A stretch of 64,000 bases of DNA from Lepidodermella squamata (lineage: Eukaryota > Animalia > Gastrotricha). The DNA is taken from assembly GCA_047495785.1 (NCBI GenBank), contig JBLDXI010000033.1, forward strand, positions 1,426,001 through 1,490,000. Direction: 5' to 3'. Positions 11,141 to 62,808 of the stretch are shown here, piece after piece; the first letter of the stretch is position 1, and each line of letters opens with the position of its first letter. The notes beneath the pieces were generated by a model that was not told the DNA's origin, did no database searches, and worked only from the letters and a program-made list of their open reading frames with translations. The position numbers and the translations under genes are program-made.

Positions 11141-11488
11141 TTAGACGGGCTGCTCTCCTACTCTATCACCTGCCGAGCTGTGCTGAGGCCCAACTGATGC
11201 TTTCGTGTAAAGAGCACCGCCAATCGGTTTATTCCGAACTTTTTCAATCACTTTGGCGACCGCGATAAGAGCTACAACGCACGTTATGGCAATCCCCATG
11301 CCGAGGGTCACGCCAAACCAGTTGACATTATTCTGTTTCGACCACCAGGCTGGGTCATAACTAGACCCGGATGAGTAAACTGCTGAAGACGTGGTCGAAA
11401 CTTGAGCTTGATAGTAGTTGAGGGAACAGTCTGGCTGCGTTGAACCATTCGGGCAAAGTTGCTGTCGTTTTATCCGAAGTAGATCCAT
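11141..11488 (-). CDS. Small single-pass membrane protein, paralog 1 of a tandem triplet
   Basis: Shares CxNGSxxPDCSL, AWWxKQNNVxWxGxTLGMG, the TM segment and KPIGGxxYTK with the two adjacent ORFs. Confidence 0.85.
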   Translation of the reverse strand: MDLLRIKRQQLCPNGSTQPDCSLNYYQAQVSTTSSAVYSSGSSYDPAWWSKQNNVNWFGVTLGMGIAITCVVALIAVAKVIEKVRNKPIGGALYTKASVGPQHSSAGDRVGEQPV

Positions 11489-11851
11489 GTAAAAACGAGG
11501 CTTGAGATTCTTGTAAATCGAATAATTTGTGGTCTATTTTGCAACTATAAATGACCTGCTCATCTGTACAAAAAGTGCATTTTTGACCCACTACGACTGT
11601 CATTTTACTATACTGCGTGAATGAAATATTGTCGCATTGAGGTGCTTAGTAACGACATTGTTGGATAATCAATACTCACGGCTTGTTTTCATCTGCCAGC
11701 AGATACATACTAAACCTGAATAAGTAGTACGCATTCTCATAAATAGCGGCTAAATGTATCGAAATACATAGGTTTTATTGGATTACACATGTTTTCGATA
11801 GCAAAGTCTTTCTTTGTGTTCCTGGTCCCTCGCCAGTAGAGTTGAAGGTAA

Positions 11852-12205
11852 TTAAACTGTTAAAGGACCGGCTTCTGTTGAAGAAGGTCCAGCATCTTCA
11901 TTATGATGAGAATGCGCCGGTATTTTAGTGTAAATAGAGCCGCCGATTGGTTTGCCGCGAATTTTTTCTATAATTTTTACTGTTGCGATGAAGATAACAA
12001 CGCACGCCACTGCGAGTCCCATTCCAAGTGTTAGACCAGACCAATTTACGTTGTTTTGCTTTGACCACCAGGCTGTATCGGATTTTGAAACTGAAATTGA
12101 TGAAACAAGCCTCGAAAATGGAGGTGGTGGGTAGTTCAGAGAACAATCCGGGGCGATGGAGCCGTTAGGGCAAGGTTGCCGCCACCACAACCACGGAAAA
12201 TCCAT
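11852..12205 (-). CDS. Small single-pass membrane protein, paralog 2 of a tandem triplet
   Basis: Same motif set; first ATG at 12205 (MDFPW). Confidence 0.85.
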   Translation of the reverse strand: MDFPWLWWRQPCPNGSIAPDCSLNYPPPPFSRLVSSISVSKSDTAWWSKQNNVNWSGLTLGMGLAVACVVIFIATVKIIEKIRGKPIGGSIYTKIPAHSHHNEDAGPSSTEAGPLTV

Positions 12206-12652
12206 TTTCAAAATTTCCAATATTGGTCGGTCATGTTTTGCAGATTTTGCGATAAATATTCAAAAAATAAGAAATCACGATTGACAAAAATTTATTTTGT
12301 AGCTAATACACCTTGGATATTTTGACCGACTGCCCACTCCTAAGAATGGCTTACGAGAACGGAAAACTCACCAGGGATTGTGCTTAGTTACGTGCACTTG
12401 ATTACTTATTTCCAATCGATAAATATCGAGGCTGTGAAATAAACCAGCCACCAAGCCAAATACTTTTATTTTCCTGCTACATTTATAAAATTTTGTAAGA
12501 TTCATACAAAAAATAAGTGTAACCCAGAGGTGAATATAAATTTATTTCTTTCAAAGCAAAAGCAGGCATGAGCAGTAGAAAAATGGAAAATTAGCTGGCA
12601 GATGAGCTGAAAAATTCAGCTATGGTACAAATCAGATAATATCAATTCGATT

Positions 12653-13045
12653 TTATACTGATTGCTCCTGTTCACTAGGCCGCGAATCTTCGGCGACTTC
12701 AGTCGGAGGATCTTCAGCCTTTGGAGCTGGCTCATTAACTGCTGCCATTTGCGTAGACGCCGCGCTTCTCTGAGGTCTCTGAGCCGGAACTTTCGTATAG
12801 AGAGCGCCACCAATCGGCTTTTTCCGAATTTTTTCTATCGCTTTCACCGCTGCGATAAAAATGACGACGCAAGCTACGGCGATGCCCATGCCGAGAGTTA
12901 CGCCGAACCAGTCCACATTATTCTGTTTGGCCCACCACGCAGGGTCCTGGTTCGATGATGATTGAGTTGTAGAGCTAAGGGAGCAGTCGGGCGCCGTTGA
13001 TCCATTGGCACATGGCTGCTGCCTCCTAATCCTCAACAAATCCAT
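12653..13045 (-). CDS. Small single-pass membrane protein, paralog 3 of a tandem triplet
   Basis: Same motif set; ATG at 13045 (MDLLRIRRQQPC). Confidence 0.85.
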   Translation of the reverse strand: MDLLRIRRQQPCANGSTAPDCSLSSTTQSSSNQDPAWWAKQNNVDWFGVTLGMGIAVACVVIFIAAVKAIEKIRKKPIGGALYTKVPAQRPQRSAASTQMAAVNEPAPKAEDPPTEVAEDSRPSEQEQSV

Positions 13046-13538
13046 GAAAATTCTAAACAATTTGACCTACTTAGTAGGCTATCAATTAAAATATTGGGGA
13101 AATTGTAAAAAATGAGAGGAAGATGCATCAGAACCATCAGCTAATTTGTCTAATTGGTTATAGGCACGCAATTCCTATATTCCTAATACATTCCTGATAC
13201 AGGTGAACTATCGCAAAAAATTCAAATATCCCATCGCTAAATGTTCCTTATTACACTGGACAATACGCTATAATTGTATCCAGCATGTGCGGTTATAACG
13301 TAATAGAAAAAGTAAATGTATATACATACTCATGTACACAGGTAATGGCGTGCGTCAAGCGTATAGGTTTTACCAAACATGTAATTGCAACAGCGACGCG
13401 AGTTGTTGTGTGTACTGGGAAGCGTTCAAAAACACCACATTCGTATTATTTATTACTCTCATAATATTATACTAGTGGCACCCGGGTACGGTTACTTTGA
13501 CCTGTGAGTGTTAGCCACAAACAACGCACGTAATAAAA

Positions 13539-16500
13539 CTAGGATGTTATGCATTGAGGAGCGATGCAAGGTCGCTGGATCTGAATGCTGCGACGGCGTT
13601 CACTCGATTCATCATTCGCGGCTTTACTCGAGTCGTTGTTGCTGTGCTTCCTGTGTACAGGCACGTGGTGGTCGTTAGGGTAGAAGCTAGATTCAATCGT
13701 GTGAATCGCTTCCATAGCTGGTTCGTTAGACCCGATTCGGAAATTCACCCGATTCTTACTTCGCGACCTTTGACTTCCATTGCCCTGGCTGTAAATTCCA
13801 CTGACGCGGCTACTAGCACCATCGCGGTCTCTATGCAATTTTAAAACTTTCACATTAGTGCCGAGAACTGCGTTCTGAATGAAATCAATGTGAAGATTCG
13901 TAGGGGACCCATGTGACCCAGCTCCTGTCCTTGAGGTTGTAGTCGAAACGTGGGTTGAAACGCTTGAAGCTCTCTGCTGGAAAAAACGATGCAAAAATTG
14001 ATAAAAAATCATGAAAAATATTACAAGAACCCTATCTTCAGCTTTCCGTTCCTCGGCGTCAGTTACAGTAGCCGAGTCTCGTAAACTTGTCGTAATTTGT
14101 TGTAGCATTTGTCTGTTGATCGATTCCATGGCGTAAACCGTCCCATCAGCTGACTGATTTCCTTTTATCTGAATAAAAAATCGAAGAGTTTCAAGTGATT
14201 TTCGGGTGATTTTATCCTTACCGTAGGAATTTCAATAGGCTTCTGGCTGAAATGCTCTTTCAGCTCGCTTAGAAATAAAAGCTCGGAAATTCGCGAAGTC
14301 CAAACGATTTTCTATTAAATTATAAATACAATGATGAAAAAGAAGAAAAGAATATTAAACTAACCCCAACTAAAGGTGAATTCATCGCCATGCTACAGGC
14401 AATTTTTATTGCCTCGCCACTGGCATAAAATCGAGGAGGTTCGATTTCAGTCCAAACGGAACTCTCAAGTGGGCCAACGTCCAAAGCTTGAAAACCAAAA
14501 TGGTAAAGTATTATAGGAAAAATGTGTTTAAAATTCCTAACCGATTTTAACAGGCAGTTTACTAGCCGCCGATTTCGTGCCCAACATCTGAAGACCATCA
14601 ACAATTTCACAAGCTAGCTGAACCGCCAAATGGGCTGGGAAATGAAACGCAGCCGGCGGTCCGACGATCACTACATAACAGCCGCTTGTGAACACCGTGC
14701 TAAGTTTCATCGCGCAATTAGAGTATTTGATCAGTAAAAGATCAAGCTGAGCGTTCAGGTTGTTCATCGCCGATACAACATCCTGAGGGGTGATATTTCG
14801 CTGCTCCAACATTGATGAGTCATCGGCGAAACAGCAAATAACAGCCGCTCGTTGGGAAAGGTTCAATTGATAGTCCTCGAGGCTACATTCAGGCGTGATC
14901 AAATTCAGCGGCATCATTTCCTCAATGAGGGCTAGTCGTTTTGAACGATAAGCATTGGCTTCTTTCAGCAAAAGGTTCAGCTGAGAGCTCATAATGAATT
15001 CCTGATGAAAAAGTTGAATTTTCCGAATTTTTTTTAACCAATTTTTCGATTTACCGAATCATGAAGGTTTTCATCTCGAGCCTTTTTCTTCTCTTTGATG
15101 CCACGATGGCTCAACAGATCGCGGCTTGTATCAGCTTTTGACAGGTCACTTGTATTAAGACCGACCTTTTTCAAATCTTGCAAGTTGTTTATGCTGTAAA
15201 ATCCAAATTTTTAAGGCGGAATTTTCAAATTATTTCCTCACATTGGCATAGCCATGAAAATGACGCAATCAAACTCCTTGAAATAAACCATTTCGCCCCG
15301 AAGTCGAAGAGGCATTAGCGTCTGGTCTTCCTCGTCGTTCAAATCAGCTGCCGTTATTGTTTCAACAGGTTTCAGGGACACCACTTCAAAGGCATTGCAC
15401 CGAAAATTCAAAATCTGAGTGATTAGTTTTGAGTGATTAGTTATTTCAGGATGGTCATAAAAATCGGCTTACATTATCCCACGTAAGTTCAATTTCCGGC
15501 CGGATCAGTTCGAAAATAACGCTGAAATCCTCGCCGACAATGCTAGGCAGTGTCGCTTTCAGCCCGGCTCCGATCGACAGAATTTCGAGATCGCGATTAA
15601 ACGCGACATAGAAAGGATTCGTATCCATGAGCACATCGGCGCGCAAAAAACGACCCTTGACATCATCTACGCAAGTCTGAAAGATCAATTCAACAGTAAT
15701 CCTATGAGAATATATGAATAGATTAATACCTCGATAAAGTACATGTCTTTATCGAACTCTTTCATGTTATCGAATTCGAGTTTAAACAAGGTGGTCACTC
15801 GACTAGTCGCATCACGGCCGGCAGTTTCGCCGTGCGACATGACCGAAACTGTCATTTGGATATTGAAGTAAGCCTTAGCCACTTCCTGTATTTCGAAATA
15901 ATAATTAGAACGAAGGGAAAAATGCGAAAAAAAACCTTCAGTTGCCCGATCACGTAGCCGTCAAACCCGCCTCGAGGTGACCTATAACTGATCAACATGC
16001 CATCGGGGTCTTCTTGAAGTATAGCAAACGATGGAGGCCGCATTTTTGGGTACGTCAGTCTGAAGTACTCGTGGACGTTGTCCAGACTAATGATAAAATG
16101 GCGCAGAGATCGGCCGATGGTTTGCAGCACCTTGTCGTAGCCACCCTGGCGGCAGAATTGAACGAAAGCCTGGCCGAAACGTTCGAGAACCACGTCGACG
16201 GGAACTTTAGTCAGCCGCGCTGTTGCGATGGCCAGACGGGATAATAACTAATGAAAAATATTCATCCCCTGGAAACTCAAAAATTGAAAGCAAAAATACT
16301 TTATCGCTATATAGTTGGTGATAAGCGAAAGCAGATCGGCTAGTTGTAGAGCTTGGACTAGTCGGCAATTCGAAATCTGGACCATCAGCCGAACTTTGAG
16401 TGTTGACAACACTGGCTACGGCAGGGTCAAAAGTAACAGCATGAAGCACATCGCTTCGACTTTCAGCCAGGTTCAAAATTTCCCGCGCCATTTCGACGCC

Positions 16501-16551
16501 GAACATTTGCTTCAAGCATTCGAAAGCAGAATGCAGCAATATTCCGTACAT
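13539..16551 (-). CDS. Atypical soluble guanylate cyclase-like protein (H-NOX, PAS/HNOBA, coiled coil, degenerate cyclase homology domain); about 11 exons
   Basis: MYGILL start, LDNVHEYF (proximal His), YRSPR (YxSxR heme motif), PFYVAFNRDL and LRLRGEM (HNOBA), then cyclase-like VKIALDVGP...PRF...IKG. In-frame exons 16551-16300, 16247-15936, 15885-15730, 15676-15473, 15414-15242, 15193-15055, 15001-14542, 14486-14365, 14311-14222 and 14168 onward. Confidence 0.88.
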
Positions 16552-19600: not shown

Positions 19601-22600
19601 ATGCATTCGATTGTCGTCTGCTTATTGCTGACGGCAACAGCAGACGTCGTATTTACGGAAGGTTTGTTAACATTTAATTCATTAATTTCATTCGGGTAGC
19701 TTTTCAATCGTTCACGCCTTCTAGGTATTAATTTTCGAGAATTTTCCTTCCTTGGTTTATAGGTTGGAGATAAATTTCTTTCACTAAATTTTGTGAACGG
19801 TTAGGAAGCGTTCGGTTTTCAGTTTTTTCGATAATTTTTTACTCATCGTTATGATCTACTATATAAGTCGCTTCAATAGCCATAGTGACGAAGCATAATA
19901 GGAAGCGAAGTGCCGCGCCGGCCGTGTCCGAATTCGACGGCTACTCGCTGGCGGCCGGCAACTGCCCCGGCGGCGAGATAGACCAGTTCGGCGTGCACTC
20001 GCGCGAGGCGTGCGCCGCGCGCTGTTCAATCATCGACGAGTGCCGCGCGTTCACGATTAGCAACGAGCGCATGACCGACGCGCAGTACCTGTGCCTCATC
20101 AAGTCGGCCGTTTGCCGCACGCCCGTGCCGTCGAACGGCTTCACGTTCCACTACAAGCTCGGCCCGTCCCCGCCCTTACCTGTTGAGCTAGAACCTGCTG
20201 ACTCATCACTGCGGCTCGTTGTCTCCCATGACGAGCCGGCGGCGCCCGTTCGAGCAACATCACTTACTAATAAAGCAGGTTATTAACGCTCACCTACCCT
20301 ACCATACCCTGACCCGTGTCGCTACTCGCTCTCCTCTTGTCTCTGCCTGTATTAACAGTTGTTGTGGGGTGTCCGCAGTCTTCTCTCTTCACACTGAAAT
20401 TTTCAACTCACAAACTCTGCTTTTAACATCAACCGCAAATCTGTTATTAATCGAGCTCATTTTTCGCAACATCAAAAAACGATAGGTTTAACGATATTCA
20501 CCTCGGACACCCCATGCTTGTTACCCAACCCAACGCTATAGGCTTCGACTAAATGTTTTTCACAGGTGATGTTGTGGGTCGTCGCGTCAATCGGCAGTCA
20601 GCCAATCAGCGAAATTTTCGATGTCGTCGGGGTGTCCTCTATAATTATTATATAAGATAAACGCTTAAACTTGTAATTTTTCTGATTTTTTTCCACAGAA
20701 AATTATTGCGTTATTTAAGAGGATTCTTTTGTATTTATTTTATAGTATACAATTACGGCGCCAACTATCCAGTGGGAGCAGCGTGGAGTCCTTGGGCGGG
20801 AGGTATGCCAAACGTACCCCCAGTTCCGAACGTGCCCAACGTACCGCCGGTCGGTAATTCTTGGAACTACGTCCCATCTTGGAGCTCGTGGACACCCAGC
20901 AGCTGGACGCCCCAGGCATGGAGCCCAGCCGCATGGGCGTACTGGGGCAACTGGGCGCCGAGCTGGTCGACCTGGGCGCCTCCGCCCGCGACCTGGGCAA
21001 CTTGGGCACCCACCGTCACATGGGCGCCCTGGTACCCGCCAGCGACGTGGGCCCCGTGGTACCCGCCCGCCACCACATGGGCGCCGCCGACCTGGACACC
21101 CTCTCCATGGAGCCCAGCCACCTGGGCTCCAACTTCTTGGTCGCCAGCTTCCTGGTCACCGTCACCCACCAGCAATTTCGGTACGAAAAACTTGAATTGA
21201 CCCAACTGACGTCACGTGACGTGTTTTCTTTTCGCTCTAGAATTTCCTGGATTTAAAAACACTGGTGGCCATTGCTATGGCAACAACTTATTCACAGCGC
21301 AGTACCCGACGCCGCAACAGTGCGCCGACGAGTGCGCGCGAAATGCCGCCTGCACTGGCTTTTCGATCGACGTCCACGAACTGACTGCGCCTTTCGATTG
21401 CGTCTTCAAAAACGGCGACTGCCCCTCGCCGCAGCCGGACGCGCGTTGGCGGTACTACCGGAAAGGTACGGTTATTCGTTTTCATCGGTTTTTTAGATGA
21501 TTGATGAAATGATTTAACAAAGTAACAGTTGTAACAGCCCCAGTAGTAGATTAATTTTTCTCGTGACTGTGACTATTTACTCTGTCTCTGTCTGACTGTT
21601 CTAATAACAGCTAACCCATCTGTCCCTACGTGGACCCCTACTTGGTCAACAACGCCTTGGACAACTTGGTACCCGAGTACGTCGTGGACAACGTGGTTCA
21701 CGCCCCCGCCGACGTGGACCACCTGGACTACTCCACAGCCGTGGACAACATGTAAACACGCGTTAACCCCAGCTCGCTTGCATTTTTATTAGATTTTTTT
21801 TTGAAAAAAAAACAACACATAGTAACGCGCAATTAAAAACGATGATTCATCATCATCGTGAGAGCTTGCAAAATTTTGCGATTTTTTTGTCTATCGTTTT
21901 TTTTCTAAAATTTGCATTGTTGTTGTTGTTGAAATTACCACCCCGGTCTCGGTAAACAGCAAGCTGGACGCCGTGCTCTCGCCCTCCCGCGTCCACGTCG
22001 ACTCCGTGGCGTTCGCCATGCTCGGCTGGTTCCTCGTGGGTTGCCCCACCGGTAGCGTGGACTGCGCCTCCGGCTACGTGGACTCCCCCTCCAGTAGCGT
22101 GGACCGCGCCTCCAGTTGCGTGGACTCCCCCACCAGTTGCGTGGACTGCGCCTCCAGTAGCATGGACTCCGCCTCCGGTTGCGTGGACAGCGCCACCGGT
22201 CGCCCCACAAGTCATCGTTCCACCAGTCACTTCTTGGATTCCCGCATCGAGTATTCACTGAACTTTGTTTAAACAACCCTTAAACAACGCGTTCCCCTCG
22301 CATACTAGTATAGATTAAATTAATCTAAAACCCCCTCGCGTTTTATTTATCGAGAATAAGCCCGTTTTACTCACGTTTCAACTGTTTGACTAACAGGATT
22401 GTTTTCGCTTTTTCATGCTTATAACTAAGACATGTTATAATGACCAAGTGAGTAATTTCAACTTTTTTAATTCGCTTCGATAACAGGTTACCAGCCTAAC
22501 TACCCTACCACCCCGTACCCGTTGCCTTCGTGGACCCCCAGCAGTTGGTACCCAACAGTGCCGGCGACAACGGGCGGTCTCGCGCAGTTCACCCGCTTGG

Positions 22601-23779
22601 CCGGCAATTGCGGCGGCAACTTCATCGGCGGAATTAGGTCACTCAGCCTCGACCAGTGTGCCCAGGAGTGCCTCAACACCCAGGGCTGCCAGGGCTTCTC
22701 ATTCTGCATGCAGACGACCTACCCGCAGTGCATCCTCAAGTCGGCTGGGTGCCAGTTCCCCGATCCGGCCGGCGTGTTCACCTTCTACCAACGCGGCGGT
22801 TATGGAAGCCCTGTCGGCGCGATCAATACCAACCCGCCTTCGAATCCTTGGTGGACAGCCGGGGTTAGGCCGTTTAAGAAATGTGAGTCATTTAATTTCA
22901 TTTTTTTCGGGTAATTTTTTCATTTTTTCCAGTGGCCCGTAACCGTTATTACGAACTTCCATTCCATTGCTCGGGCCCGATTCTTCAGGGCCCGGAGAAC
23001 TGGGACTTGGACACGTGTGCTGAGAAGTGTCTGAACGATTACAAGTGCACCGGTTTCTCATTCGACGTCACGCTCAAAGTTGAACCATTCGCGTGTATCC
23101 TAAGAACCGGCGTTTGCCAGGCCATGGCGATCAGCAGCCGATGGGCCTACTACGAACGGGCGGATGTTAAAGGCCCTAAACAAGTCACGTCACAGGTGCC
23201 AGGCGCCGACGACGGTAAAGAAGCTGTAGATCAAATCATTACCAAAACAACTGTCTCGGTTGAAACGAATGCTCAACAACACCAGTCTAGCAGCCATTCC
23301 GCTACGGATAGTCAAAACGAACGACAACCTCTTCCAACTCCTACCTCTCAAAAACCAGCGTTCACAATTTCGAAAAACATCGAGGAGAGAACAATCTACA
23401 ACATCGAAAACATCGACTGTGAGAAAAAATTTTAAGGACGATTTTTTGAATTACAGATTATTTTATAGTGACAAGCCGTTTCGAGCAGTTGAATGGTAAC
23501 TGCCCGGGCAACGTGCTGGGCGACGAGCAAGACCTGACGGTTGCCGAGTGCGCGAAAGCGTGCCTGCAAACGCCGGGCTGTGCCGGATTCACGTTCAACG
23601 TGCAGCGGCAGACGCGGCCATTCCAGTGCGTTATGAAGTCGCAAGGCTGTGCAGATCCGGCCGGCGTTAACGGCCAGTGGCGATTTTTCTCGCGGCGATC
23701 ATCACTGGTGCAACACGACGCCCTCGAAACCGAAGCGCCCGTAGTGTCAACGCACTCGACCCAGTCGAGGCGGAAATGA
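19601..23779 (+). CDS. Secreted protein A with five PAN/apple-like Cys domains and Trp/Pro/Thr-rich linkers; join(19601..19661,19886..20278,20746..21180,21241..21465,21611..21751,21960..22251,22487..22882,22933..23418,23469..23779)
   Basis: Signal-peptide exon MHSIVVCLLLTATADVVFTE; repeated 6-Cys module G(N/H)CxG..CAxxC.....CxGF(S/T)...CxLKxxxC; all eight introns are GT-AG and phase 1. Confidence 0.8.
22044..22204 (+). repeat. 21-bp coding tandem repeat encoding (A/P)PPVAWT, about 7-8 units
   Basis: CCNCCNGTNGCGTGGACN units recur inside exon 21960..22251 with synonymous variation. Confidence 0.85.
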
Positions 23780-61086: not shown

Positions 61087-62808
61087 ATGCAATATTATTT
61101 GTGTGTTGGACTAATTATTTTTTGTACTTCTTTCATCTTCTCAGTTAAATGTGCTATAGTTCGCCCGATACCGCTGTCTGGCGAGGAATACGTAGTCTCC
61201 GACCCAAGTCATCCGAAATGTCGCAACGCTACCGATGAAGAACTGCTTTCGGCTCATCTTTTCAGCAACTATGACACTATGGCGGGTATGAAATTCACGG
61301 AAAAAATAAGCAATTAAGATTAATTAACTGGAAATCAGGGCCAAAACTCAACGGCATTGATCCTATCAACATTCAAATCGGGTTTATGATAACTTCTATT
61401 CAAGAGATGGATGAAGTCAGCCAAATACTTCACCTTCTAGTATGGTTATCTGTGGTATAATAAAATTTAAACAATTAATTATGAAAATATTAAATTTAAA
61501 TTAAATTAGGTATGGCGCGATGAAAGACTCGAATGGGACTTGAGGCAATTTTCCGGCATCAAGACTTTAACAGTCCGTACCTCGCAAATTTGGCTAGCGG
61601 ATTTGGTGCAATACAACTCAGCCGAAGAAATGAACTCGAATTTTTTGAATACCGCAAATGCTGTTATTAGTAATCAAGGTGTCGTGCGAATCATGACCCA
61701 ATTACACCTATTCGTCGCCTGTCACATGGATCTCACGATTTTCCCATTCGACGACGCGAAATGCCACGTAAAATTCGGCTCTTGGACTTACGATATGGAT
61801 AGCTTGATACTTCACAACGATTCATCGCAAGCTGATATGACTAAATATTCGGGCAACGCGAATTGGGTCATAGACAGCACTAGTTTCTTCCAAATTCAAG
61901 AGCGAGTAAGACCGGTCGTGAAGCATTCCCATACCCCGGCATTTGTCATACCCTCTGGATATCCACCAACATTCGTCCCTAGAACTGTCACCCGGCCATT
62001 CGCTGACGTCGAGCTTGTGCTAAGATTGACGCGAAAATCTTACTCATCCTACATTTTCTACATCTTCATACCATGTTTGACTGTTGAATTTGTTTCATTG
62101 CTTTGCTTCTGGCTGGATCCGAGGGATAACGAAAAAGTCACACTAGGTATTGGCCTTATCTTGACCTACGTCGTTTTTCTGCTTGTTGTCAATCAAAAAT
62201 TACCTCGCTCTGCTACGGAAATTGTCCCTCTTATAAGTATTTATCTTGCTTTAACTATGTCTCTAACCGCTATCATGGTTTTCACCCAAATCTTCCTATT
62301 AAATTGGTACCTCCGCCCCGTTCATTTAGGCCCAGTTCCGAACTGGTTGCGTAAGGTTTGTCTCGAGTGGCTCGGGTGTTTAGTTAAGGTTTGCAGTAGT
62401 GAGTCCTATCGATTGATCGATGAAAGCAAAATCGAGAGTACAAAAGCTCCATCGTCTATTAAAACAGCTAAATTGACATCATCACCTGCCTTCAACTCAT
62501 CAATGTCGATGGATTCGTTTTTCAGTCGTAACAAAAACGAGGGTCTAGATGGCAATTTACAACGGCTGAAGGTTATTGAGACGAAAGTTGAGAATACGGT
62601 CAAGTATTTTACGTCGGACCGGTCTGAACGATGGACGCGTGAACGGTATCGGCAGGACTGGTTTCGCGTCGCCTTCATAATTGACCGCGTGTTGTTCTAC
62701 CTGTTTTTCATCATCACGTCCGTCATCAATGTTATCACGCTATTTTGGATTCCAATGTCGCATTACGTCCACGCATCTGACGGCGATAGTGATGCGACCA
62801 ATGACTGA
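61087..62808 (+). CDS. Cys-loop ligand-gated ion channel, nAChR-like non-alpha subunit; join(61087..61285,61339..61454,61510..62808)
   Basis: Signal peptide, WRDERLEW, IWLADLVQYNS, Cys-loop CHMDLTIFPFDDAKC, FGSWTYD, M1-M4 with EKVTLGI and DWFRVAFIIDR; no vicinal CC. Confidence 0.93.

Follow-up and report, generated by a model that had tools for sequence, protein, structure and literature searches.

To our knowledge, all characterised animal H-NOX domains sit in enzymes that turn gas binding into cyclic guanosine monophosphate (cGMP), and our searches of published papers found no exception. What could such a heme sensor do once the cyclase domain fused to it has lost its active site? This question is raised by a minus-strand gene within a 64,000-nucleotide stretch of the gastrotrich Lepidodermella squamata (contig JBLDXI010000033.1, positions 1,426,001 to 1,490,000; this whole stretch is referred to as the window, and positions are counted from its first letter). 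The original prediction, made from the letters alone, described the gene as an oxygen (O2)-type H-NOX sensor fused to an apparently dead cyclase domain. Our analysis agrees that a protein of gas-sensor type (a predicted sensor) is encoded here and that its gene is intact, expressed and selectively maintained, based on the spliced RNA contigs, the 27:3 ratio of synonymous to non-synonymous variants, and the heme residues described below. We give a probability of roughly 0.5 to the reading that this gene encodes a non-catalytic descendant of the Gyc-88E-like soluble guanylate cyclases (sGCs), for which cGMP-independent signaling through protein contacts is predicted to be the likeliest output.

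The gene model was obtained by joining open frames through GT..AG introns. It has 11 exons separated by ten such introns, each 48-58 nucleotides long, with an unbroken frame that encodes a product of 828 amino acids; the earlier statement that the frame is intact over about 11 exons was borne out both by translation and by the model refined with RNA contigs. Its parts are as follows:

16551-13539, minus strand: coding region of the H-NOX pseudo-cyclase, with the ATG at 16551 and a TAG stop ending at 13539 (model checked by translation)
16551-16300, 16247-15936, 15885-15730, 15676-15473, 15414-15242 and 15193-15055, minus strand: exons 1-6
15001-14542, 14486-14365, 14311-14222, 14168-14025 and 13973-13539, minus strand: exons 7-11
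13429..13538, minus strand: 3' untranslated region, reaching at least this far (X1 contig record 1 spans 13429-13716)

The public run X1 is recorded only as 'RNA?'. Since its contigs are devoid of the GT..AG introns, X1 derives from spliced RNA, and the H-NOX gene is therefore expressed, which settles the possibility, raised with the original prediction, that it might not be. Introns 2, 3, 4, 5, 8 and 10 are skipped exactly by spliced contigs; the position of intron 10 (14024-13974) was taken from these contigs and is shifted by a few bases from the guess based on sequence. The exon 6/7 and 9/10 junctions (introns 6 and 9) are carried on loose ends of X1 contigs. Introns 1 and 7 have no RNA support, and both junctions are colinear with uninterrupted exons of an orthologue, L003, which is described below. 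X1 coverage runs out immediately 5' of the ATG.

The coding variants present in X1 and X2 reads, which stem from a second haplotype or strain, include 27 synonymous and 3 non-synonymous changes (n = 30), against 76% non-synonymous changes expected from the codon make-up (P ~2e-14; P ~5e-10 for transitions only). Taking into account these variants, the spliced transcripts and the intact frames of 823-828 amino acids that persist in this gene and its orthologue despite saturated synonymous divergence (dS), the gene is functional and under purifying selection, and is not decaying. The very weak score of its cyclase domain, together with the mere four matches that exon 7 returned among 1.84 billion representatives, could be taken as signs of a decaying pseudogene or of an artefact of the gene model. 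This explanation is scarcely credible, as it is contradicted by the spliced RNA contigs, the 828-codon frame intact over 11 exons, the 27:3 variant ratio, and the existence of an intact syntenic orthologue.

Read from the N-terminus, the protein consists of an H-NOX and an HNOBA/PAS domain, followed by a coiled coil, a cyclase-fold domain that is very degenerate, and a tail rich in Ser/Thr; the last four residues, CITS, resemble a CaaX box. Domain and fold searches were run exon by exon and via relatives of the gene. The heme-sensing part includes:

15730..16551, minus strand: H-NOX heme domain, exons 1-3, residues 1 to ~240 (Pfam HNOB and PDB sGC beta1 matches)
16071..16073, minus strand: proximal heme ligand His143 in LDNVHEYF, aligned with beta1 His105
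15972..15986, minus strand: YxSxR heme-propionate motif Y172-R-S174-P-R176 (YRSPR), aligned with beta1 Y135-S137-R139
15954..15956, minus strand: distal-pocket Tyr182, in the column of rat and human beta1 Ile145 (HMMER alignments to Manduca and human beta1)
16330..16461, minus strand: insertion rich in Ser/Thr, residues 31-74, placed between H-NOX helices 2 and 3 (covered by X1)

Exon 2 alone matches Pfam HNOB (PF07700) at E 2.3e-29, with a score of 102.9 bits where the cut-off is 25.5, and matches the PDB H-NOX structures of Manduca and human sGC beta1 with E values of 2e-21 to 5e-16 in HMMER searches. The heme-binding residues that had been proposed as intact are indeed found in register with beta1: His143 lies in LDNVHEYF and is conserved in the relatives L003 and L006 and in Gyc-88E-like proteins, YRSPR occupies residues 172-176, and the heme-contact residue Pro156, aligned with beta1 Pro118, is intact as well. 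From these residues, the domain is predicted to bind heme. In the distal pocket, both the HMMER alignments and the alignment with 88E-like proteins place Tyr182 at the position of beta1 Ile145, as the original prediction held, and in the multiple alignment this residue shares its column with a Tyr in 6/7 Gyc-88E-like proteins. A distal Tyr in the column of Tt Tyr140 and beta1 Ile145 is one of the features that mark the O2-binding type and a hallmark of the atypical Gyc-88E-like clade (PMC1435932). Tyr182 thus suggests O2 as the predicted ligand. The position of Tt Trp9, a hydrogen-bond partner of this Tyr, is an Ala here (N-terminus MYGILLHSA, aligned without gaps). Animal atypical sGCs likewise lack the Trp9/Asn74 pair, and its absence has no bearing on membership of their clade.

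The Ser/Thr-rich insertion, estimated earlier at about 35-40 residues, measures ~40 residues when compared with seven Gyc-88E-like proteins, all of which lack it; 15 Ser/Thr residues lie within residues 31-78. The insertion is present without conservation in L003 and is shorter in L006. An unspliced intron was considered as its source and ruled out, as X1 contigs cover the region and L003 carries the insertion inside a single exon. As a separate observation on the 88E-like proteins, paralogue A of salmonids (P0010/P0011), which is annotated '88E-like', has a Phe in place of the distal-pocket Tyr (TQFVKGQ), and the six other 88E-like proteins have Tyr.

The second half of the protein contains the following features:

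14121..14851, minus strand: degenerate domain of class III cyclase fold, spanning residues 463-652 (coordinates include the introns; Pfam below cut-off; matches by family profile)
14822..14824, minus strand: Asp472, the first metal-binding Asp (FAD for FSD), sole surviving residue of the canonical set (from alignments)
14681..14701, minus strand: KLSTVFTSGCY segment, with the guanine-specifying Glu replaced by Ser513 and the second metal-binding Asp by Gly519 (from alignments)
14392..14427, minus strand: PRFYASGEAIKIACS segment, with the specificity Cys replaced by Tyr586, the transition-state Asn by Lys593 and the transition-state Arg by Ser597 (from alignments)

The match of exon 7 to Pfam Guanylate_cyc (PF00211) has an E value of 0.032 and 14.3 bits, under the gathering cut-off of 21.9 bits. 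A profile built from the window gene and its relatives, when searched against PDB cyclase domains, matches AC5 (E 2e-9), GC-A (E 1.5e-7) and sGC beta1 (E 1.3e-5). For one relative, P0002, all neighbours in the Atlas, by protein-language-model features and by structure, are cyclases, and the top 50 Foldseek matches of the AlphaFold model of its pseudo-cyclase domain are all class III cyclases (template modelling score 0.24-0.36; mean predicted local distance difference test score, pLDDT, 54.7). Judging by these matches, the C-terminal domain is a true class III cyclase homologue that appears to have kept its fold.

Active-site residues were mapped through three independent alignments, which agree with each other: with AC5 C1; with GC-A, AC5 and AC8 via the family profile; and with seven Gyc-88E-like sGCs. 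The eroded motifs CCFADDSSM, KLSTVFTSGCY and GEAIKIACSMA are all present as first quoted. The loss of the second Asp and of the Asn/Arg pair, which had been claimed from these motifs, holds in every alignment, none of which restores any of the three. The doubt expressed about the first Asp does not hold, as FAD aligns with the FSD/FAD of real cyclases. The diagnosis of a dead domain is strengthened by additional losses: the guanine-specifying Glu, the specificity Cys and the Lys of KGKG (a motif that is absent altogether) are also gone, so that replacements affect 6/7 residues of the canonical catalytic and specificity set; the PRF motif still has its Arg. Small alignment shifts cannot bring the catalytic residues back, because direct reading shows that KLSTVFTSGCY is free of Asp and Glu and that GEAIKIACSMA lacks an Arg.

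In the mechanism of class III cyclases, one subunit provides the Asp pair and the other provides the Asn, the Arg and the base-specifying residues. Since the first Asp is all that is kept of the catalytic set, the protein would supply neither half of an active site. On these alignments, no canonical active site is possible for it in a homodimer or in either role of a heterodimer, and it is predicted to make no cGMP.

To place this loss in time, relatives of the gene are informative; those found come from metagenome or Logan assemblies. A search with exon 7 against 1.84 billion representatives returned only four matches, all of them unannotated metagenome or Logan open reading frames (ORFs), and among these representatives it found neither this genome's own protein nor an annotated family member. 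Three of the matches are real relatives; the fourth was examined as a candidate relative and rejected as spurious, being a repeat protein. A word search with the H-NOX-PAS ORF of the orthologue gave three matches only. A profile search, in which a trout sequence stood first and dominated, returned canonical 88E-like proteins only, with no dead-cyclase member in the top 120.

The relative on L003 is a three-exon gene encoding 823 amino acids, with the same architecture as the window gene and a cyclase site that is also dead. Contigs L002, L003 and L004 are near-identical, differing from each other at 3 synonymous and 0 non-synonymous sites. A multi-exon PAN/apple gene lies divergent from the H-NOX gene in both genomes (window 19858-22887, plus strand; L003:15-3679, minus strand), and its exons match in order between the two at 40-52% identity per exon. 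Because this divergent neighbour is shared, L003 carries the positional orthologue of the window gene; the gene pair has been kept together despite saturated synonymous sites.

Further relatives are found on L001, L005 and L006. Their heme residues are present wherever the H-NOX domain is covered, and none of them has the catalytic set. The residues in three catalytic columns are:

First metal-binding Asp: Asp in the window gene and L003, Asn in L001, Gly in L005, His in L006
Catalytic Asn: Lys in the window gene and L003, Val in L001, Ser in L006 (L005 uncovered)
Catalytic Arg: Ser in the window gene, Glu in L003, Lys in L001, His in L006 (L005 uncovered)

The catalytic loss is therefore old, because the orthologue and the other relatives all lack the set and show lineage-specific substitutions. 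This pattern is what would be expected if catalysis was lost long ago and the former active-site positions could vary freely from then on. It also bears on whether the domain might still be an enzyme, either a nucleotide cyclase or a protein with another nucleotide-dependent activity that uses non-canonical residues. Such an activity could draw on the retained first metal Asp and PRF Arg and on a fold homologous to active cyclases. We consider it very unlikely, as 6/7 canonical residues are replaced, the Pfam Guanylate_cyc score is under threshold, and the replacements differ from one relative to the next, first Asp included, as in an unconstrained former active site.

The exon structures of these genes differ. 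The window gene has 10 introns and its orthologue has 2 (L003:7893-7957 and L003:8333-8401). A phase-2 intron after AMP(I/V) is common to the window gene, L003 and L005, and an intron within the cyclase-fold domain (after MFNN / SAINW) occurs in L003 and L005 and is absent from the window gene. Regarding the surroundings of the L001 relative, it is adjoined by two genes similar to Cys-loop receptors (Neur_chan_LBD; L001:2070-4270). The window has a Cys-loop receptor-like ORF of its own at 61540-62808, 45 kb away, for which tblastn at E 1e-4 gave no match.

A comparison of dN/dS with orthologues had been proposed along with the original prediction. Between the window gene and L003, dS is saturated and gives no omega for the pseudo-cyclase, so the non-synonymous divergence (dN) was compared, which turned out to be graded by domain:

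H-NOX core: 71% identity, dN 0.19
PAS: 55% identity, dN 0.39
Coiled coil: 40% identity, dN 0.58
Pseudo-cyclase: 34% identity, dN 0.75
H-NOX insertion: 17% identity, dN 1.16
Tail: 21% identity, dN 1.17

These values indicate that the dead cyclase domain is under weak but real constraint and that the heme domain is the functional core. A membrane-anchored buffer, scavenger or store of gas, in which the H-NOX domain would act in a globin-like manner and the remainder would be a slowly decaying appendage, would account for the H-NOX domain being much better conserved than any other part (71%, dN 0.19) and for a fast-evolving C-terminal half. However, a pure gas buffer would be expected to shed the other ~600 residues, and the PAS domain (55%), the coiled coil and the pseudo-cyclase evolve clearly more slowly than the unconstrained insertion and tail and keep their frame and length despite saturated dS, which makes this alternative highly improbable.

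The non-catalytic scaffold can be traced to a known branch of sGCs. The profile search returned hundreds of proteins annotated 'soluble guanylate cyclase 88E-like', and the window protein aligns over residues 1 to ~600-640 with 88E-like proteins from molluscs, annelids and brachiopods, at ~30% identity and 230-273 bits. The H-NOX core in exon 2 scores 88-105 bits against 88E-like proteins vs 62-79 bits against beta1, and the motif LDN(L/V)HEY is common to the window protein and 88E-like proteins in the multiple alignment. A tree built on the H-NOX-PAS region groups the window protein, L003 and L006 into one clade on a long stem, with 100/100 support; this tree has no beta1 or alpha outgroup, and therefore shows the clade only, not whether it falls inside or beside the 88E-like clade. 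On these similarities, the gene is most simply described as a non-catalytic offshoot of the atypical Gyc-88E-like sGC lineage. Both this ancestry and the CaaX-like signal are additions to what had been noticed at first.

The remaining features are:

15055..15676, minus strand: HNOBA / PAS-like domain, exons 4-6 (Pfam HNOBA E 4e-13, 1e-4 and 6e-4 on the three exons)
14852..15001, minus strand: C-terminal part of the coiled coil / signaling helix, at the start of exon 7 (colinear with the Gyc-88E-like coiled coil)
13554..14120, minus strand: low-complexity C-terminal tail, rich in Ser/Thr and basic residues (22% Ser/Thr, 19% Arg/Lys/His)
13542..13553, minus strand: C-terminal CaaX-like box CITS, a predicted prenylation signal, followed by the stop (Cys at position -4)

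The position of the CaaX Cys is kept by CITS in the window protein and by CAQS, in which the orthologue L003 terminates. A Cys at -4 from the C-terminus is also found in 5/7 Gyc-88E-like proteins (CMLL, CFIL, CVII, CCLL and CCIS). The window protein is thus predicted to be prenylated and placed at the membrane through CITS, and the wide occurrence of this Cys in Gyc-88E-like sGCs points to membrane targeting as a putative old property of the O2-sensing branch.

How does this protein compare with known H-NOX systems? With the Gyc-88E / MsGC-beta3 clade it shares the order of domains, from H-NOX through HNOBA/PAS, coiled coil and cyclase fold to a long C-terminal tail. Proteins of that clade carry the full set required for a competent homodimer (FSD, KVETIGDAY, GDTVNTASRME and KGKG) plus a PF00211 domain, whereas the window protein has a ~40-residue insertion in its H-NOX domain and a far more diverged coiled coil, a region that is almost invariant across phyla among Gyc-88E-like sGCs in the multiple alignment. 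The alpha1 and beta1 subunits of the nitric oxide (NO)-sensitive sGC have homologous H-NOX, PAS, coiled-coil and cyclase-fold domains, and they are a precedent for half-dead subunits, each with an incomplete site, and, in alpha, for a pseudo-H-NOX domain. Alpha and beta complement each other into one active site, whereas the window protein can complement neither, because it lacks both the Asp pair needed for the alpha role and the Asn/Arg/Glu/Cys set needed for the beta role. It also differs from beta1 in the distal pocket, which has Ile in beta1 and Tyr here.

Bacterial stand-alone H-NOX proteins (Tt, Nostoc/Shewanella) have the same heme domain, as reflected in the match to the PDB Nostoc H-NOX structure (E 1e-12). 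These proteins signal gas binding to a separate effector through protein-protein contact, with no active cyclase attached. They are single-domain or MCP-fused proteins, in contrast to the window protein, an animal protein of 828 amino acids with the whole sGC scaffold; Tt H-NOX further differs in the Trp9 of its O2-binding network, which is Ala here. In our literature searches, no paper described an H-NOX protein of sGC type whose cyclase is dead, and none dealt with rotifer sGCs.

Taken as a non-catalytic Gyc-88E-like descendant, the protein could work as follows. Its H-NOX domain would bind heme via His143 and YxSxR, and then a diatomic gas, for which O2 would be the likelier ligand given the clade-typical distal Tyr182, with NO and carbon monoxide also possible. 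The PAS, coiled-coil and cyclase-fold domains may serve as a retained scaffold for dimerisation and conformational relay, in which the cyclase-fold domain would make no cGMP, and the C-terminal CaaX-like box would put the protein at the membrane. The output would pass through protein contacts instead of cGMP synthesis of its own, most likely with paralogues of the pseudo-cyclase itself or with a membrane-associated protein as partners. Both the dimerisation and the mode of output are predictions that we infer from the retained domains.

Several points weigh against this reading. A Tyr in the distal column merely correlates with O2 binding and does not guarantee it, and results with beta1 I145Y in the full-length enzyme are reportedly negative. 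CITS and CAQS differ from textbook aliphatic CaaX boxes. None of the 30 read variants falls in the pseudo-cyclase exons, which means that variant-based selection is not measured for this domain alone, and the 34% identity of the pseudo-cyclase to its orthologue shows weak constraint only. Moreover, the AlphaFold model of the P0002 domain is poor (pLDDT 54.7) and was not used for residue mapping.

The partner may also be a different one. The coiled coil and the cyclase domain mediate subunit pairing in sGC, and a regulatory or dominant-negative subunit could form a heterodimer with a competent subunit of the sGC family or of a receptor guanylate cyclase, and thereby silence that partner, tether it to the membrane or place it under gas control. 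The full sGC dimerisation architecture is kept, and a subunit that retains the first Asp alone completes neither of the two pseudo-symmetric sites, so that any such heterodimer would be inactive. A precedent exists in the inactive heterodimers that MsGC-beta3 forms with NO-sensitive subunits, as cited in PMC1435932. Nevertheless, the parts that would form the interface (coiled coil and cyclase fold) are those most diverged from canonical Gyc-88E-like proteins, a mild argument against pairing with ordinary subunits, and they are only 34-40% identical between orthologues. In addition, no catalytically competent sGC subunit was seen within the window; a genome-wide search was not made. We therefore regard this alternative, although it is the strongest competitor, as rather doubtful.

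Returning to the non-catalytic descendant that signals through protein contacts, a bolder form of this reading is that an animal H-NOX receptor has been uncoupled from cGMP altogether, giving rise to a lineage-specific, prenylated sGC family in which a dead cyclase dimer would act as a switch that relays O2 or NO to a membrane partner. We put this forward tentatively, as possible rather than probable. If true, bacterial H-NOX logic would have been re-invented in an animal, and the sGC scaffold would have its first output that is independent of cGMP. Selection has preserved a complete sGC scaffold long after the loss of its active site, and the gene is expressed and is syntenic in a distant species, which implies that a second, non-enzymatic readout of a heme gas sensor may exist in animals. 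The gene would also provide a natural 'pseudo-cyclase', comparable to pseudokinases, in which to study non-catalytic roles of the sGC dimer.

Other observations concern the locus at large. Rfam and tRNA scans of the window gave no match. Immediately downstream of the H-NOX gene, at 11141-13060 on the minus strand, are three tandem ORFs of 115, 122 and 135 amino acids. They encode similar small single-pass membrane proteins that share CPNGS..PDCSL, AWW.KQNNV.W, one hydrophobic helix and KPIGG..YTK, and they gave no match to the L003 ORFs at the corresponding position.

The X1 contigs contain joints of 'opposite strands' at 13324/13429, 16022/16153 and 16305/16395, in or beside the H-NOX gene, which are probably fold-back artefacts of assembly or library preparation. 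X2 depth is ~46 vs 62, and X2, and in part X1, carry a second haplotype that is ~5% divergent at 13844-14205, 15933-16119 and 16152-16492. The stretch 14206-15962 appears as a single contig without differences. The pattern could reflect patchy divergence, gene conversion or collapsed homeologues. A divergent read across the exon 6/7 junction is present in X1, suggesting that both haplotype forms are expressed.

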